A DNA stretch of 64,000 bases, taken from the sequence record OR529409.1. The stretch is one strand, 5' to 3'. The notes under the pieces were generated by a model. That model made no database searches. It was given only the letters and a program-made list of their open reading frames with translations, and had not been told where the DNA came from. Below, one piece after another: positions 2,004 to 8,720 of the stretch. Position 1 is the stretch's first letter; the number at the start of each line of letters is the position of its first letter. The position numbers and the translations under genes were made by a program.

Positions 2004-3494
2004 TTACTTGTACGCGTCTTTAGTCAGCGTTCGTAAAACGATATACAGCATCAGACTCGTTCTTAATGAACTTACTGTAATGCGGGTTTTTATCCCCGTC
2101 AGTTGTCTAACAATGTCATCGCCTTCATCTCGCATCTTAAAGACACTTTGGTTCTGACTGCGGCTACTGAGATACGCCCCACGCATTCGACGTAACACTT
2201 CTCTCAGGTCGTTTGCCCGAATACCGTTTTCCGTTAAGTATTCGAACAAGTGGGTGGTAACTTCGTCGACGAACTCTCTGTACTTAGCTCCCTTGGGCGA
2301 GTTATACTGATCGGGAAATACCCGGATAATTCGCTCCAGTTTATCTCTGGGAGAGTTGTCAATGGCTTCCGCAGCGTAACCTACCAGCTCGTCCTTGTAA
2401 AAGCCTGCAGAAGAACTGAGGACGTTTTGGATGTAGTTTTTATACTGAGTAACGTTCTTCGTCACCTCTCGTACACTTACTCCATCTTCCAGCGTGACCA
2501 TCCCACCGTCCAATCTGACGATATTGGTTTTCGATTTCACTTCATGGAAAACTTTGTTAATGTCGTTGATCACGCCTCTGAGTCGATCCTGGATATCACC
2601 GACCATGTAAATGATTTTCTTGTCATCATCCATGGTGGTAAACGTTTTATAATGGATCCCCGTTTTGGGATCTAAAATAAACTCAGCCCTGGCTCGGATT
2701 AACGCCATCCAACTACCGTAACGTTTGATGTCATAACGCATGCTTAAACGGTTATAAGTTTCCATAGCGATCTCTTTCTTCGCCAGGTATTTATAATCGT
2801 TCGCCATAATACTCGTCAAACATTTGTAATGGTACATCGCTAAGATGTTAACCATCGCATTGTGTTTAACGCGGTCATGGAGATCGCTATGAAACGTCCG
2901 GTATAACAAATAAACAATACTCAGGTTGAACACGTCACCGGTAACTTTCCAGGTCGCATTGATCAGTTTACAGGCGTGGAGGTTTTCTCGTAACTCTTCT
3001 TCGTCGACATCGAAGATTTCAGCGAACCAGCGGTTTCTGTCTTCTGATGTGAAAACGATTCGGTGGATGCCCAAATAGGGATTACCAAAGAATTCCACGT
3101 ACTGTTCGTTCTTGGTGGTAAACCCAATGACGTACCGGGTCAGTCTATCGGCCCAACGGTTATCGATTTCTAAATCGTGTCCGAATGCGTTAAACACACC
3201 GAGTATCGCGTGATCGGTATTGAAATTGTAATTGGGTAGCAGAGCTTCAAAACCAGATATCCCAAATGTTTTTTGAAGGAGTTTCTCGATTCCCTTGTCG
3301 GGGGTAATCTCCTCGAACATTTTGACTTCGGGTTCGGCGTCGTACATCCCATCTTCGACCAACATCGGATCTCCGCTTAAAATCCCACTGGGATCAAATA
3401 CCGGTAATCCAGAAAGCTTATCGAACCATTGACGGTCGTCATTCTGAAAATAGCTCTCAGAACCATTGAGACGATCTGCGTATTGATTAAACAT
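2004..3494 (-). CDS. conserved phiKZ-like core/virion-associated protein (496 aa)
   Basis: Long ORF; position upstream of phuZ matches the conserved phiKZ-like pair as I recall it (synteny inference). Confidence 0.6.
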   Translation of the reverse strand: MFNQYADRLNGSESYFQNDDRQWFDKLSGLPVFDPSGILSGDPMLVEDGMYDAEPEVKMFEEITPDKGIEKLLQKTFGISGFEALLPNYNFNTDHAILGVFNAFGHDLEIDNRWADRLTRYVIGFTTKNEQYVEFFGNPYLGIHRIVFTSEDRNRWFAEIFDVDEEELRENLHACKLINATWKVTGDVFNLSIVYLLYRTFHSDLHDRVKHNAMVNILAMYHYKCLTSIMANDYKYLAKKEIAMETYNRLSMRYDIKRYGSWMALIRARAEFILDPKTGIHYKTFTTMDDDKKIIYMVGDIQDRLRGVINDINKVFHEVKSKTNIVRLDGGMVTLEDGVSVREVTKNVTQYKNYIQNVLSSSAGFYKDELVGYAAEAIDNSPRDKLERIIRVFPDQYNSPKGAKYREFVDEVTTHLFEYLTENGIRANDLREVLRRMRGAYLSSRSQNQSVFKMRDEGDDIVRQLTGIKTRITVSSLRTSLMLYIVLRTLTKDAYK

Positions 3495-3502
3495 ATCGTC
3501 TC

Positions 3503-4348
3503 CTAGATCCGACTTGGGACAGCGTTTCTGATGGCGTTGTATCTCCGATCCGGGTCAGAATACGTCATGAGTTTTATCCAGCGAGTTTTAAACAATTCCT
3601 CGTACTGGTTAAGACTGTCACGGTACTCACTGATATCGTCACGGATAATATCAACCTGGACCCCAGAGCGGGCTACTCCTTCGTCGACTTTGTACCGAAC
3701 TGTTTTCCAGATGTAGTTCTTGGTCATCAGGATAACTAAGTCGCCAAATACGTCGTAGGCTCTCGGATGGATCGTGGATAAACCATCGTCGTAACTCAGG
3801 ATAAGTTTACCTGTCAGGGAGAACACCCCACTCGGCGCGCCATGGATCACAAACGAGTTATTCCCGACGAGAGTTATATTCGTGAACGTCTGGGGGATTT
3901 CTCGGTTGGGTAACATCCCGTTGATCATGGAGTTCAGTGCGTCGTTGACAGTACCTACCCCGCATGAGTCAGCATTGCCAAGTACGCTCATGATCCCACT
4001 GGAGGAATTCATCGCCCCCTGGTAAACTTCCACAACCGAAATAATTTTCCGACCGCCCGTCAAGAAATCAGGGACGTTAACCAGCTGCATCCCTTGGCCG
4101 AGATGTTCAATCCGAGATCCGGTTAAATCAATCAGCTCCGTCACCCCACCCTGGACGTTACACCGGGGTAGGATGATCGCATGTATAATTTTTTCTCGAA
4201 TACCTTGCTGAACGGTGGTCTGCGCGTACTGGTTATACCAGTTCCCGGTCAGATTCCCGTTAGGGTTCGAGAACGCAAGCTCCAACAGGTACTCGGGGAT
4301 GTCACTCCCGTTGAGAACTTTGTTGATCGCGTAGTCCACGCAGTTCAT
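3503..4348 (-). CDS. conserved phiKZ-like protein; start probably ATG 4348 (MNCVDYAINKV)
   Basis: GGGAG RBS on the minus strand before ATG 4348; N-terminus resembles a conserved jumbo-phage protein as I recall it. Confidence 0.6.
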   Translation of the reverse strand: MNCVDYAINKVLNGSDIPEYLLELAFSNPNGNLTGNWYNQYAQTTVQQGIREKIIHAIILPRCNVQGGVTELIDLTGSRIEHLGQGMQLVNVPDFLTGGRKIISVVEVYQGAMNSSSGIMSVLGNADSCGVGTVNDALNSMINGMLPNREIPQTFTNITLVGNNSFVIHGAPSGVFSLTGKLILSYDDGLSTIHPRAYDVFGDLVILMTKNYIWKTVRYKVDEGVARSGVQVDIIRDDISEYRDSLNQYEELFKTRWIKLMTYSDPDRRYNAIRNAVPSRI

Positions 4349-4842
4349 AATCAACTCCCACACTGAGTTTCGGGACTGGAGGAATTTCCGTCTCGATAAA
4401 AATTCAACTGAGAATTTTTACTCTGGGGTTTCGGCGGTTATAATATTTCACTGCGGGAATTTAAAAACTCAACGGGTTTACGATCCCGTATGTTTTTGAG
4501 TTTTATTTCCCGTATAAAATACTCCGTGCCGTAAGACAACACCCCACAGAAAAAACCTCGCCTCCGGAAAAAATTCCTCGAAGGCGAGTTGCCATGATCT
4601 CACTCGAGCAAGAATCAATCCGACATACAATCCCAAGCGCTCCGAAATTTTTTTCTTCGGAATTTTGGTCATTGGTAAATTTTTACATACAAATCTATTT
4701 TATATTTGTATTTTTCGCTTGCGCGGATATTCTAATTTTTCAAAGATAATCTAAAACCGATTCCGGTTCTGGGTTTTTTATTTTTCTGTGTTTTGATTTT
4801 CCAAATCCAATTTTCAAAAATCTAAATCTAAAAATCTAAAAA

Positions 4843-5217
4843 ATTTAATACTCAAAAATCGATTTTTGCTAGGGGTCCTTATTACGCGTGCGTACGCCCG
4901 CACGCATATAAAAAATAAATATAATACGTAGTATTATATTTTCCTTTGGTTTTATATTTTTAATTTATTAAAAATATATTAATATAAATTATTATAAATA
5001 TTTTTTATTAGTTTGTTTTTATAAAAAATATATAAATATATATTTATATATATTTATATTCATTAGGCGCGCGCCAGCGTGCGTGTGTGTACGTGCGCGC
5101 ACGCGTAATAGAGAAGGGGTTATAAAAATACAAGATTGGCCCTGAGAGATTATCCAGAAAAAATCACACAGAGTAAAAATATTAACCGGAATGATTTTGA
5201 GAAGATTTAATACTCAA
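4843..5217. other. origin-like element: near-pure AT core flanked by inverted and direct repeats
   Basis: 13-bp IR TATTACGCGTGCG 4880-4892 / CGCACGCGTAATA 5098-5110; about 155-bp almost all-AT core 4907-5065; 13-bp direct repeat ATTTAATACTCAA at 4843-4855 and 5205-5217. Function inferred. Confidence 0.5.
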
Positions 5218-5452
5218 CCTAGGAATTCGTATCAGTCGGATGAAAAAACGTTTTAGAAATCGATACAGGAATTTTTAGAGGGTGTTCTGATCGAGTTCTC
5301 AGGAAGGATTATTCACTGAATAAAAATATTTTAATCAAGATAATTAATTTTTACCGCAAGTTAGATTTATCGAGACAAGAAGATTTAACCGCAAAGTAAT
5401 ATCTTACGGAGAGCATAATCTTCTGAGCAGGACAGAGATCTCGAATTGTCAG

Positions 5453-6247
5453 ATGGCAAATACCCCATCCGTTCGAAAGTTAACCCGAAACATCCCTAAG
5501 AGGCGATATCCTATGCAACCAGCTAACCCATGGAAAAACAACAAGCACGTTAAATCACAAGACTCAGCAAGTGTTGATCGTTACGAATCCCTGTTACAAG
5601 AATTACCTGATGCGTTGAATGCAACCCCTCGAGATCCCGGATATCTTATAGCGACTAAAAAGATTTTATTAGTCCTGGAAATGTCTGAAGGAACCCGACT
5701 GACCGTTCGCAACGTGATGGAAAACCCAGACATGATTCGTAAGGTCCACGAGTTGTTGGTGGAGTTAGGCTGGAAGCAAGCGATTAGCCGAGGGACTCAG
5801 GTTTTCGTCACTCACCAGGATTTAATTAAACCGAGTATCTACCGCTTAATCGACCTCGACGCTAATGGGATCGGTTACGCTAACGAACTGCTGAATAATA
5901 TTTTATTAGACCGTCGGTTCAGTGCTCGGGTAGACAATAACGATATTCGAATCCTCCCAGGAGACCGTAGCGCAAGTAACCCCTTTAGCCTGCTGTCGTC
6001 TAACGTCGTCAGTGGTTGGCGTAAAGCCATACGGGATTACGACAAAAGCGTGACGGGTAATCTTATTGGACACATGACGGTTGTCGGCGAAGACAATACG
6101 AATATCCCGCTTGATTTAAAACTGGTTTTCGCTCTGCTGGATTACATTGGGTGGCCAGAAATGTATTTTACTGGCGAACAGATTTTATTGAGTAACCCCA
6201 TTGGGGATTATCAAACCCTTGAAGTGAATTTCATCGACCCTGAGTAA
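5453..6247 (+). CDS. orphan hypothetical protein (264 aa; alternative start ATG 5513 with GAGG RBS)
   Basis: Only long ORF in the 4350-7750 island; no recognisable motif. Confidence 0.75.
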   Translation: MANTPSVRKLTRNIPKRRYPMQPANPWKNNKHVKSQDSASVDRYESLLQELPDALNATPRDPGYLIATKKILLVLEMSEGTRLTVRNVMENPDMIRKVHELLVELGWKQAISRGTQVFVTHQDLIKPSIYRLIDLDANGIGYANELLNNILLDRRFSARVDNNDIRILPGDRSASNPFSLLSSNVVSGWRKAIRDYDKSVTGNLIGHMTVVGEDNTNIPLDLKLVFALLDYIGWPEMYFTGEQILLSNPIGDYQTLEVNFIDPE

Positions 6248-6319
6248 TTCCTAACGACAGAGTGATGTTATTAGTAAAGATCTTTGGACTCCCTGTTGAT
6301 TAACTAGCGACCCAACCTC

Positions 6320-6490
6320 ATCTCTTTGAACCTCCTTACCACGAGCGAGATAGCCAAAGTAGCTAGAGATTTTCAGGGGGTTCAATCCCCATTATTCGTT
6401 AATCTTATTAGACCCATTGTCCTTAGCCATGTAGCGACGGCCATTCTCCTGTGACAGACAAGTTTTTTGTTCAATGGGATAGATTAACGT
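6320..6490 (+). ncRNA. structured RNA domain upstream of the hammerhead
   Basis: Helices 6326-6336/6375-6385 (11 bp with one G-U), 6397-6405/6481-6489 (9 bp), nested 6413-6419/6472-6478 (7 bp); no ORF of 60 aa or more in the track. Confidence 0.6.
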
Positions 6491-6499
6491 TTTTCTTCA

Positions 6500-6572
6500 C
6501 GTCGTGTTATCTGATGAGTCTTCGACGCTAAACAAGACGAAACCTAATGAATCTATTTTATTAGGTCATAAT
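6500..6572 (+). ncRNA. hammerhead ribozyme, type I, predicted cleavage GUC after C6567
   Basis: CUGAUGA 6511-6517; stem II GUCUU 6518-6522/AAGAC 6534-6538; GAAA 6539-6542; stem III 6542-6551/6557-6566 (10 bp, one G-U); GUC 6565-6567; stem I 6506-6510/6568-6572; loop II CGACG 6523-6527 complements CGUCG 6500-6504 (pseudoknot). Confidence 0.9.
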
Positions 6573-7215
6573 TCAACCTAAGCGTTGAACGGGCAGTTAG
6601 GGGCAATGGTCCCCGAGGTCTTCAGCTTCTTCGCCTGCCCGCACTAAAAAGTTCTTTCATGATTAGGAGTGCCGCACTCTACGAGCGGACAATAAGCAAC
6701 CGAAAGTGGGAGAGAAAGAAGCGTGTCTGGTCGCTTGCCGGAAAGTTGGTTCAGGCCGGTTTCTTCCCAACCCAAACGACGCTGCCCAAGATAGGGCTGC
6801 AAGTCGTATTAGCGAATTATACCGGTATGCGGGGTTTCCGCGATAAACCGGGTTAGCTACGGGTAAGAAACCGGCCGGAGTAATCAGCCTTTCGTATTCG
6901 GGTAACGTGAGTTATTGTAGAGATATCTCTGAGGGTTAGGCCAACCCCCGACGTTCTCCGAGTCCGAAGGGAAGCTTGCTCAGCTTCGTAGGAACTCCAA
7001 AATCTCAGACGGTCACACCTCGCAATCTTACGGCAGTATGATTGCCTATTCGTCCTTTGTCGCTCACCAAGGGGCGAGTAGGAAACCTCTGCCACGGCGT
7101 TTCGTTTGCCTTTTACCATTGCTTTTGTTATAACCTCTCTGTTTGAGTTGAGTGTTAACTTCCCCAAGAGTATAACCTGTTATCTCTCTCTTCGTGAGAA
7201 GTCGGAGATAATGGG
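6572..7215 (+). ncRNA. large structured RNA of unknown class (about 640 nt)
   Basis: Many nested helices, e.g. 6590-6596/6635-6641, 6754-6765/6865-6876 (12 bp perfect), 6877-6881/6994-6998, 6971-6976/6982-6987, 7032-7037/7041-7046, 7127-7132/7171-7176, 7180-7186/7205-7211; G-U pairs read correctly only on the + strand. Confidence 0.65.
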
Positions 7216-7237
7216 GTAAATTCTTAGGAGGTTCGTT

Positions 7238-7426
7238 ATGTACACATACCAGTATACCGTGCGATACCGAATACCTAATTCTGTGTTTACGACTTACAGC
7301 GGAGAAATTACTTCCGACTGTTTGCTCACTAACGCTAATCGCATCTTTGACGTTTTGCGCACTGAGGTTCATAAAGCTACTAACGTTAACTCGTTTAGCA
7401 TTACGAACTTTAAGCTGAAAGAATAA
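7238..7426 (+). CDS. small protein (62 aa) inside the structured-RNA transcript
   Basis: Perfect AGGAGG RBS at 7226-7231, ATG 7238. Confidence 0.7.
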   Translation: MYTYQYTVRYRIPNSVFTTYSGEITSDCLLTNANRIFDVLRTEVHKATNVNSFSITNFKLKE

Positions 7427-7594
7427 GTCGAGCTACGCGCTCAACCTACCTTAGGGCCGGAAGTAGTTACGACTTAGGGGGAAAGAAGAGTCGTGCCTTT
7501 AAGTACCCCAACCCAATTCGTGTGGTGATCTCTCACATCATCTCATGAATATCGCCACATCATCATTAAAGTTCTACCATGAATTTTTATTCCT

Positions 7595-7626
7595 TCCAGT
7601 AGGGTTCGGCCCTACTGGACTTTTTT
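7595..7626 (+). terminator. intrinsic terminator closing the structured-RNA unit
   Basis: TCCAGTAGGG/CCCTACTGGA 10-bp stem, loop TTCGG, followed by a T6 tract. Confidence 0.9.
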
Positions 7627-7650
7627 CGCGTTTTTTAAATCGGCAGTTGT

Positions 7651-7691
7651 TTAATTATGTCAGAACTAGATTTTTTCAGTTCTAAATTATG
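7651..7691 (+). promoter_or_regulatory. tandem candidate phage-RNAP promoters upstream of phuZ
   Basis: TTAATTATG 7651-7659 and TAAATTATG 7683-7691; the same 9-mer is at 36397-36405; the TATG core resembles the phiKZ nvRNAP late-promoter start motif. Confidence 0.4.
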
Positions 7692-7757
7692 GTAATGTAA
7701 AGCAAAAGATAATGCTTTCCATTCCAACTATCATAATTTCTTTTAGGAGCTAGATCA

Positions 7758-8720
7758 ATGAGTACATTACGTGTTTACGCGTGCGGCGGTACTGGTATTA
7801 ATATCGCGTCTAAATGGATTGCCACCGGTGCGAATACGCTTATTCGTAAAGCCCAGTTCATCGGACTGGATAGCAGTGAAAACAACAAACCGTATAATGA
7901 CGCCTTTAAGGTCGAACGTCCTGAAGGAACTCGTGGCGGCGGTAAGGAACGTAAGCTGATCGGTAAAATTGCCGCCGGGTTTATTGACAGTATTTTGACC
8001 AAACATAAACCGGGCGATTTCAACCTGATCATCATGAACGCGGCAGGCGCTACCGGGAGTACGTTCGGCCCGACTCTGATCAATCGTCTCCTCTCCCAGG
8101 GGGTCCCTGTCATCGCCCTGGTCGTAGGCGACCTGACCTCGGAACTGGAAAACTACAACACAGTTAAAACGTTTGAAAGCCTGGACAACCAGCGCATCAA
8201 TCTGAACGTACCGGTTATCATCGACTACGTGGACAACGCCAAATATCCCAGCCGCGGATTGGCCGACAAATACGCCATCGGCCGTCTTGATATCCTGAGC
8301 CTGTTCTTAACCGACGAACATGAAGAAAGTGATTTCCAAGACATCCGGAACCTGTTCTATTACAACCAGGTTACCAAGGCGGCACCTACTCTTGCTCGTA
8401 TCGACTTCTTGACCGATACTCAGTTAGACAACGTTACTCCAGGCCTGGTTGCTGAATTTGGTTTGTATCGTAAAGCGGACGACATCGGCAGCCATATTAA
8501 AAATCTGGCATACCGTTCGACCGGCGTTATTCAGGAAGGTAGCACTAACTTCCCGGCTGGAATAGAACATCTCCACATGGTCTTTGATCATGATGCGACG
8601 ATCAAAGATATCCTGGTTCTGGTTCAGGATCTTAAAGATATCGAGATCCAAAATAACGAACGTTTTAAATCTGCCCAGCAGGTTGGAAACGGCGGTGATG
8701 ATTCCGGAATGTCCTACTAA
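7758..8720 (+). CDS. phuZ: PhuZ phage tubulin
   Basis: RVYACGGTGINI N-terminal tubulin/FtsZ motif, GTRGGGK, T4-loop-like AAGATGSTFGP; 320 aa; jumbo-phage context. Confidence 0.93.
   Translation: MSTLRVYACGGTGINIASKWIATGANTLIRKAQFIGLDSSENNKPYNDAFKVERPEGTRGGGKERKLIGKIAAGFIDSILTKHKPGDFNLIIMNAAGATGSTFGPTLINRLLSQGVPVIALVVGDLTSELENYNTVKTFESLDNQRINLNVPVIIDYVDNAKYPSRGLADKYAIGRLDILSLFLTDEHEESDFQDIRNLFYYNQVTKAAPTLARIDFLTDTQLDNVTPGLVAEFGLYRKADDIGSHIKNLAYRSTGVIQEGSTNFPAGIEHLHMVFDHDATIKDILVLVQDLKDIEIQNNERFKSAQQVGNGGDDSGMSY

Follow-up and report, generated by a model that had tools for sequence, protein, structure and literature searches.

Does a nucleus-forming jumbo phage cut one of its own transcripts with a hammerhead ribozyme, and what could such a cut be for? 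The question is raised by a stretch of 64,000 nucleotides from sequence record OR529409.1 (hereafter the window), in which a sequence-only reading had picked out a complete type I hammerhead at positions 6500-6572. Our analysis indicates that this site is probably a genuine, functional type I hammerhead embedded in a long structured RNA of the + strand, with cleavage predicted between C6567 and A6568. All of the hammerhead elements that had been named could be read directly from the sequence at the positions given for them, as follows.

6506..6572, + strand: type I hammerhead ribozyme, with predicted cleavage between C6567 and A6568.
6500..6504, + strand: CGUCG, the 5′ strand of the pseudoknot, which pairs with loop II at 6523-6527; a U follows at 6505.
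6506-6510 and 6568-6572, + strand: stem I (GUUAU/AUAAU), five pairs, one of them G-U.
6511-6517, + strand: core CUGAUGA, read directly from the sequence.
6518-6522 and 6534-6538, + strand: stem II (GUCUU/AAGAC), five Watson-Crick pairs, with G10.1-C11.1 next to the core.
6523-6533, + strand: loop II, CGACGCUAAAC, 11 nt, of which the first five bases are CGACG.
6539-6542, + strand: GAAA.
6542-6551 and 6557-6566, + strand: stem III, ten pairs from A6542-U6566 to A6551-U6557, one of them G-U, closed by the loop UCUAU.
6565-6567, + strand: GUC cleavage triplet; the cut would follow C6567.

The core that defines the hammerhead class (C3 U4 G5 A6 N7 G8 A9, G12 A13 A14, A15.1-U16.1, and H17) is complete at this site. 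Standard pairs adjoin the core at G6518-C6538, U6510-A6568, and A6542-U6566, and multiple mispairs are absent, as Perreault et al. (2011; PMC3088659) require for acceptance of a hammerhead; the topology is that of type I, with stem I open and stems II and III capped. The loop II pseudoknot of the sequence-only reading also stands: CGACG at 6523-6527 is perfectly complementary to CGUCG at 6500-6504, and a distant relative (L069, below) carries a compensatory change in this helix. Roughly 40% of natural hammerheads, of all types, have pseudoknots that join stems I and II, and fast cleavage at low Mg2+ requires them (PMC3088659).

A descriptor scan of both strands, which demanded the core plus three stems, returned this site as the only strong match in the window (stems of 5, 5, and 10 pairs), and 200 shuffled versions of the window gave no match. 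Nor was there any match in the other ~186 kb of the genome (~250 kb in total). When the stem thresholds were relaxed to 3/3/4, two weak, chance-level matches appeared elsewhere in the window. Unrelated type I hammerheads obtained by pattern scan (in L071, L072, and L074) served as positive controls for the descriptor. One of these controls, L074 (6101-7700, from the Patescibacteria metagenome-assembled genome JAHCSE010000023.1), holds three hammerheads in 1.6 kb, an arrangement described for prophages.

The window belongs to a Klebsiella phage of the genus Miamivirus, which is classified in Chimalliviridae, and phuZ, the tubulin gene, lies 1.2 kb downstream of the ribozyme; both points bear out the earlier description of the host of this ribozyme as a nucleus-forming jumbo phage. 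The non-coding stretch that contains the site is 100% identical in Stenotrophomonas phage BUCTxx100, 99.3-99.7% identical in the Klebsiella phages phiKp_32, YC1, and Miami, and 93% identical in KPN8 and Raoultella phage VB_ZK_P1. We compared three lineages: the Miami group, from which seven sequences were examined, and two distant lineages, SRR11192622 (L007 and L068) and SRR21633404 (L069), which were reached by protein searches with the neighbouring genes in read-derived assemblies. PhuZ of L068 is 74% identical to that of the window, and PhuZ of L069 is 49% identical. L007 carries a homologue (39% identity) of the hypothetical 264-amino-acid (264-aa) protein encoded upstream of the ribozyme, and its contig stops 21 nt past the cleavage site. 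L068, which comes from the same sample, supplies PhuZ, a small open reading frame (ORF), and the tail of the 3′ RNA domain, and L069 has the whole element without the 264-aa gene. Nucleotide identities to the window are as follows.

Hammerhead: 86% in L007/L068, 80% in L069.
phuZ: 69% in L007/L068, 58% in L069.
Small ORF: 63% in L007/L068, 55% in L069.
264-aa gene: 52% in L007/L068, absent in L069.
Other non-coding sequence: 57% in L007/L068 (3′ tail), 38-45% in L069.

Alignable sequence between the window and L007 starts exactly at G6501, in the 5′ strand of the pseudoknot. The sequence-only reading had listed a lack of core conservation in related phages among the findings that would refute it, and conservation was found: across eight sequences, drawn from the three lineages, no fixed core base varies, and stem I and the pseudoknot covary. 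The sole core change, U6515 to C in the metagenome phage L008, falls at position 7, which is the unconstrained base.

Outside the core, the variation keeps the hammerhead pairings. Within Miamivirus, G6506 to A in phiKp_32 and KPN8 turns the end pair of stem I from G-U into A-U, and the two variable bases of loop II both lie outside the pseudoknot. The changes in L069 extend to three helices. In stem I, the third pair goes from U-A to C-G and the fifth from G-U to G-C; the pseudoknot reads CGUCU/AGACG, a compensatory change of G-C to U-A; and stem III is shorter, with one A-U to G-U change. L007 has a rebuilt stem III tip. Both-sided changes are thereby found in three pairs (U-A to C-G and A-U/G-U/G-C in stem I, and G-C to U-A in the pseudoknot), and stem III shows one-sided changes that keep pairing. 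Among five distinct sequences, 97.5% of cells pair, versus 26-56% when the partners are slid by 1-3 columns, and the observed pairing values were reached by 11 of 500 shuffles. Judged from these alignments, variation of this kind is to be expected from selection on a working hammerhead and is hard to explain otherwise.

Several observations weigh against this reading. Two of the stems, I and II, are short and rich in A-U pairs. In the nested minimum-free-energy fold (-17.6 kcal/mol), a CGUCG/CGACG hairpin takes their place, and the hammerhead secondary structure (-10.5 kcal/mol) together with the pseudoknot helix (~-5.3 kcal/mol) is comparable to, not better than, this nested fold. In L007, stem III contains an A-A mismatch and the pseudoknot is missing its outer pair, keeping four of the five pairs. 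The covariation comes from three lineages only and is therefore modest support, and stem II never varies and so is uninformative. The phuZ neighbourhoods of Aphrodite1, PDCC-1, RisingSun, and USC-1, which are other Chimalliviridae, have no ribozyme. Finally, the best scores against two Rfam hammerhead models are low: 23.7 bits for Hammerhead_3 (RF00008), versus a gathering threshold of 48.5 and in a false type III register that leaves the stem I hairpin no room, and 19 bits for RAGATH-1-hammerhead (RF03152), versus 56.3, in the correct type I register.

The Infernal/Rfam check that the sequence-only reading had proposed thus turned out unfavourably, with scores below the gathering thresholds. 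At these thresholds there was no Rfam match in the window plus 150 kb of the remaining genome, and membership by gathering score failed for the hammerhead families RF00163, RF00008, RF02275-7, and RF03152. The sub-threshold alignments still place the core correctly. In RF03152 (clan CL00010), the core and the stem III/stem I register align to the 3′ two-thirds of the model, and CUGAUGAG...CGAAAC aligns to Hammerhead_3, which belongs to the same clan, as does Hammerhead_1. The parts that fit these models badly (18-24 bits versus gathering thresholds of 48.5-56.3) are the 11-nt loop II and the 10-bp stem III. Going by the bases that define the class, the site is a hammerhead, and it is not a member of any Rfam family derived from a seed. 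Standard annotation misses the ribozyme because its Rfam scores are below the thresholds.

What RNA would such a ribozyme cut? The site lies in an ORF-poor gap between the 264-aa gene and a 62-aa ORF, all on the + strand, with the following features around it.

5453..6247, + strand: gene for the hypothetical 264-aa protein, as given in the ORF list; other gene callers start it at M21, position 5513.
6264..6395, + strand: 5′ RNA domain, a long irregular hairpin in the predicted fold, whose apical loop displays AACCUCCUUACCAC at 6329-6342.
6413-6419 and 6472-6478, + strand: variable hairpin CCCAUUG/CAAUGGG, lineage-specific and absent in L007 and L069.
6568..7105, + strand: 3′ structured RNA domain of ~540 nt, with which the predicted 3′ cleavage product begins.
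7238..7426, + strand: 62-aa ORF, conserved and preceded by a strong ribosome-binding site (AGGAGG, 7228-7233); its long leader contains the hammerhead.
7595..7629, + strand: intrinsic-terminator-like element, an 11-pair hairpin (7595-7619) followed by a T run, before phuZ.
7758-8720: phuZ (tubulin), downstream of the terminator-like hairpin.

The order of displayed-loop hairpin, hammerhead, structured leader, small ORF, and phuZ is kept in L069 and in L007 plus L068, and all three lineages have the small ORF between phuZ and the hammerhead RNA. Its orthologues at the same position encode 62-63 aa and are 63% identical in L068 (244-432) and 34% identical in L069 (946-1137); the protein matches no Pfam or PHROG family. 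The element at 7595-7629 is likely the end of the transcription unit, and L069 has a counterpart after its small ORF, a hairpin plus T run at ~1262-1296. On the upstream side, the 264-aa gene is probably co-transcribed with the ribozyme RNA. Its protein also has no Pfam or PHROG family, its homologues are confined to Miami-like phages (82.5% identity) and L007 (39% identity), and its AlphaFold model is poor, with a pLDDT of 51 that is too low to justify a fold search. An obligatory partnership of this protein with the ribozyme is ruled out, as L069 lacks the gene upstream of its hammerhead.

The sequence-only reading had placed the ribozyme between two structured RNA domains. This is borne out, more firmly on the 3′ side (fold z = -4.3) than on the 5′ side, which has a weaker z = -2.65 and one compensatory helix, 6413-6419/6472-6478. 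In four diverged Miamivirus relatives, identity is 96-100% per 100-nt window across 6501-7100, versus 68-100%, and mostly below 96%, in the flanking coding DNA, which makes the 3′ domain the best conserved stretch of the locus within Miamivirus. The z = -4.3 applies to 6568-7140, which folds better than its shuffles. Eleven of the 12 variable predicted pairs within Miamivirus still pair, including one double change of U-A to C-G, and most of the pair-keeping changes are G-C/G-U or U-A/U-G, which are compatible with the + strand only. Between lineages, the domain varies in most of its sequence and in its length (~670 nt versus 350 nt). The few islands retained in L069 and L068 include a covarying CUGGUCGCU..CCGG.AAGUUG hairpin and GCCUAUU followed by a hairpin.

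Neither flank matches a known RNA family: over 4300-7800, Rfam searched up to E = 10 gave only noise, in a check that covered group I and group II introns, tRNA, transfer-messenger RNA (tmRNA), RNase P, and large structured RNAs (GOLLD, ROOL, and others) as far as these are in Rfam. Public records place minus-strand hypothetical ORFs over the 3′ domain (CPT_Miami_268/269 and KPN8_253/254). We judge these ORFs in Miami and KPN8 to be probably spurious, since they have no family matches and the region is much shorter in L069.

The 5′ domain is remarkable for one loop. The displayed sequence upstream of the hammerhead is ACCUCCUUACCAC / AACCUCCUUACCAC, and the nine bases after the initial A of AACCUCCUUACCAC are ACCUCCUUA, which is identical to the last nine bases of the 16S rRNA 3′ end, the anti-Shine-Dalgarno tail. 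AACCUCCUUACCAC is kept in L007 (~1506-1519) and in L069 (470-483) amid 5′ sequence that is otherwise unalignable, and in all three lineages it falls in the apical loop of a long hairpin. The predicted unpaired probability of the loop is 0.80-0.98, versus 0.35-0.43 for the whole region. In ZK_P1, an A-to-G change in the closing stem of the loop converts an A-U pair to G-U. The variable hairpin nearer the ribozyme has a compensatory pair in KPN8 and ZK_P1, where it reads CCCACUG/CGGUGGG.

Two further ideas about the 5′ domain were set aside. Conserved pairing in cis between the loop and the ribosome-binding site of the 62-aa ORF is found in the window only (-18.9 kcal/mol, p ~0.03); in KPN8, L068, and L069, pairing of the loop with the ribosome-binding site of the small ORF is no better than that of shuffled loops. 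The GGGGGUUCAAUCCCC hairpin at 6376-6390 resembles a tRNA T-arm or a weak intrinsic terminator. A tRNA or tmRNA reading fails: ARAGORN finds neither kind of RNA in the genome, window included, and in the predicted long hairpin the segment has 6283-6294 as its partner. Alternatively, it may serve as a weak terminator; in relatives, the U run behind GGGGGUUCAAUCCCC is longer (UAUUUUUUCG in L008).

We propose the following model for the locus. Transcription would start in the AT-rich region of divergent promoters (~4750-5450), or at a promoter closer to the RNA, and would end at the terminator at 7595-7629. The hammerhead would fold co-transcriptionally, with the pseudoknot keeping stems I and II side by side, and would cut itself between C6567 and A6568. 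Because it is of type I, the ribozyme would mostly stay on the 5′ product, forming a compact 3′ end that bears a 2′,3′-cyclic phosphate and comprises nearly the whole ribozyme. The 5′ product would also carry the hairpin with the 16S-tail-like loop and, in Miami-like phages, the mRNA for the 264-aa protein. The 3′ product would begin with a 5′-OH at AUAAU and would contain the structured domain at 6568-7105, followed by the mRNA for the 62-aa protein. The weak 5-bp, A-U-rich stem I would let the two products separate. The likely purpose of such a cut would be to uncouple the fates of the two RNAs (their stability, translation, and perhaps location) without halting transcription, and processing of long hammerhead-bearing phage transcripts has been proposed likewise (PMC3088659).

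A more ambitious reading, which we regard as rather unlikely, is that the hammerhead is the maturation site of an undescribed two-part phage RNA in one branch of the nucleus-forming phages, and that it acts as a ribozyme-dependent device near phuZ. The 5′ part would be a stable small RNA that shows the copy of the 16S tail (ACCUCCUUA...) and carries the folded ribozyme with its cyclic phosphate at the 3′ end. Translation would be its target in trans: the small RNA would either sequester Shine-Dalgarno sequences or serve as a decoy for factors that bind the 16S tail. The 3′ product, a large structured RNA, would have a function of its own, and both RNAs would together form an RNA-based device for host takeover or gene timing.

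An unlikely alternative is a conditional ribozyme in a sensing leader: alternative folds of the flanks, or a bound factor, would gate cutting and thereby set expression of the 62-aa protein and perhaps of phuZ. The glmS leader ribozyme provides the analogy, and the site does lie inside a long leader that is structured and unusually conserved. Its weak stems would make activity sensitive to context, and competing folds are predicted, in which the pseudoknot strand forms a plain hairpin or an upstream CGUUU pairs with the 3′ strand of stem II. However, this upstream pairing is not kept in L007 or L069, and Rfam gives no match to a ligand-binding motif or riboswitch family. The 3′ domain diverges strongly between lineages in sequence and in length (~670 nt versus 350 nt), whereas the ribozyme is constant.

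It is also conceivable, if quite improbable, that the site is conserved for a non-catalytic reason, such as a structure for protein binding or packaging or a signal at the DNA level, and that the hammerhead-like fold is inactive or irrelevant. The Rfam scores under threshold would suit such an account, as would the difference between the active fold and the nested minimum-free-energy structure. Yet the variation obeys hammerhead rules, with a fixed core, a free position 7, and compensatory changes in stem I and the pseudoknot, which would not be expected of a DNA signal or of an unrelated structure. The interchange of G-U, A-U, and G-C pairs fits an RNA of the + strand only.

We consider it highly improbable that the ribozyme is part of an inserted RNA element of the selfish or mobile sort, whether an intron, a satellite, or a circle like a viroid or retrozyme. 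Hammerheads are classic in circular RNA replicons and retrozymes (PMC5680766; PMC7761336), and the ribozymes so far described in Chimalliviridae are mobile group I introns only (PMC12908238). The locus itself looks otherwise. There is one hammerhead per genome, and the 3′ end of the domain holds no second ribozyme that could support excision or circularisation. We found no terminal or flanking repeats as the signature of a mobile element, no intron family match, and no interrupted gene, and the arrangement is syntenic in three diverged lineages. An nhmmer search with the RNA gave no paralogue in the rest of the genome and no homologue in the phuZ loci of relatives, and a blastn check for a host-derived RNA, run against genomes and plasmids of E. 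coli, gave no match. The last alternative, chance resemblance in non-functional intergenic DNA, has only the sub-threshold Rfam scores to appeal to and is already refuted, as far as sequence data allow, by the 0 matches in 200 shuffles, the covariation, and the standing of the motif as the most conserved element of the locus across lineages.

How widely is this hammerhead distributed? By blastn against the phage collection, the ribozyme occurs in no record beyond the Miami-like relatives. IMG/VR, searched with the ribozyme pattern and with PhuZ or the 264-aa protein, returned only Aphrodite1 and USC-1, with no ribozyme near phuZ, and one unrelated hammerhead. A permissive pattern applied to JGI metagenomes gave 53 matches, all of which lack stem II and are noise. 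Of two scans of GTDB genomes, the first was empty and the second gave three unrelated hammerheads that have only the stem II sequence in common.

The DNA around the locus has some features of its own. The divergent intergenic region contains, within 4876-5115 (also L007 1-230 and L008 ~3370-3620), a 32-nt GC-rich block of alternating purines and pyrimidines, TCCTTATTACGCGTGCGTACGCCCGCACGCAT; its identity is 100% in a phage where the protein next to it has only 39% identity. After a further ~150 nt at ~20% GC comes another GC block, partly inverted, with ACGCGTAATAGAGAAGG at its end. The whole element at 4876-5115 looks like an origin or early control region. The decamer WTTTTATTAG has five copies in the window, all on the + strand, versus 0.7 expected; four of them lie within 5002-6564, and one is the 3′ strand of hammerhead stem III. 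TAATCTTATTRGAC is present at both 6058 and 6400. We rejected the recurrent TAATCTTATT or WTTTTATTAG as a promoter: there is local enrichment, but the copies do not keep to a fixed place with respect to genes. In the annotation of BUCTxx100, what look like large non-coding gaps at 110-119 kb turned out to be uncalled ORFs.

It is the context that makes the locus interesting. Chimalliviridae separate transcription, inside a protein-walled nucleus, from translation, and the function of phage hammerheads is generally unproven. The case is a tractable one: the copy is single and strictly conserved, the phage can be cultivated, its relatives have been sequenced, the neighbours of the ribozyme are defined, and one point mutation in the core would isolate the effect of the ribozyme from everything else. 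The site thereby offers a route to the purpose of phage hammerheads and to the part that RNA processing plays in gene timing or RNA sorting in nucleus-forming phages. It also exposes a gap in annotation, where Rfam thresholds miss the ribozyme and public records show doubtful minus-strand ORFs over conserved RNA.

Among known systems, the glmS ribozyme is likewise a self-cleaving element in an mRNA leader, whose cut leaves a 5′-OH on the downstream mRNA and alters the fate of that mRNA. It belongs to a different ribozyme class and needs glucosamine-6-phosphate (GlcN6P) as a cofactor. Nothing indicates a ligand for the phage hammerhead, unlike glmS, and the likeness is functional only, as that of one self-cleaving leader ribozyme to another.

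The closest relatives in kind are the hammerheads of phage and prophage genomes, where such ribozymes, including pseudoknotted ones of all three types, are common (PMC3088659). Like those described by Perreault et al. (2011), the present site has the consensus core, Watson-Crick pairs beside the core, short stems I and II, and a pseudoknot of 4-6 bp that links the stem I and stem II regions. It is also intergenic in a phage transcript, as they are, and the processing of long transcripts is the role proposed for them. It differs in being a single copy, whereas several often flank prophage genes in the published cases, and in its topology. Here the ribozyme is of type I and loop II pairs with the 5′ tail entering stem I; in the PMC3088659 consensus, the type is II and loop I pairs with the 3′ tail after stem II. 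Its setting differs as well, namely a nucleus-forming jumbo phage and a conserved structured leader of 0.6-1 kb.

Within Chimalliviridae, the only kind of ribozyme reported in the literature searched is the group I self-splicing intron in the RNA polymerase gene of PhiPA3 (PMC11620839; PMC12908238). That intron is a large splicing ribozyme with a homing endonuclease and sits inside a protein gene, whereas the phage hammerhead is of a small, self-cleaving class and lies in a non-coding leader, with neither an endonuclease nor an interrupted gene. The sequence-only reading knew of no described role for such a ribozyme in this family, and our literature searches agree, in that they found no hammerhead reported for it; only group I introns are discussed for jumbo or nucleus-forming phages. 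By the literature searched, the site at 6506-6572 is the first hammerhead candidate in Chimalliviridae, and it belongs to a kind that is well known in phages.

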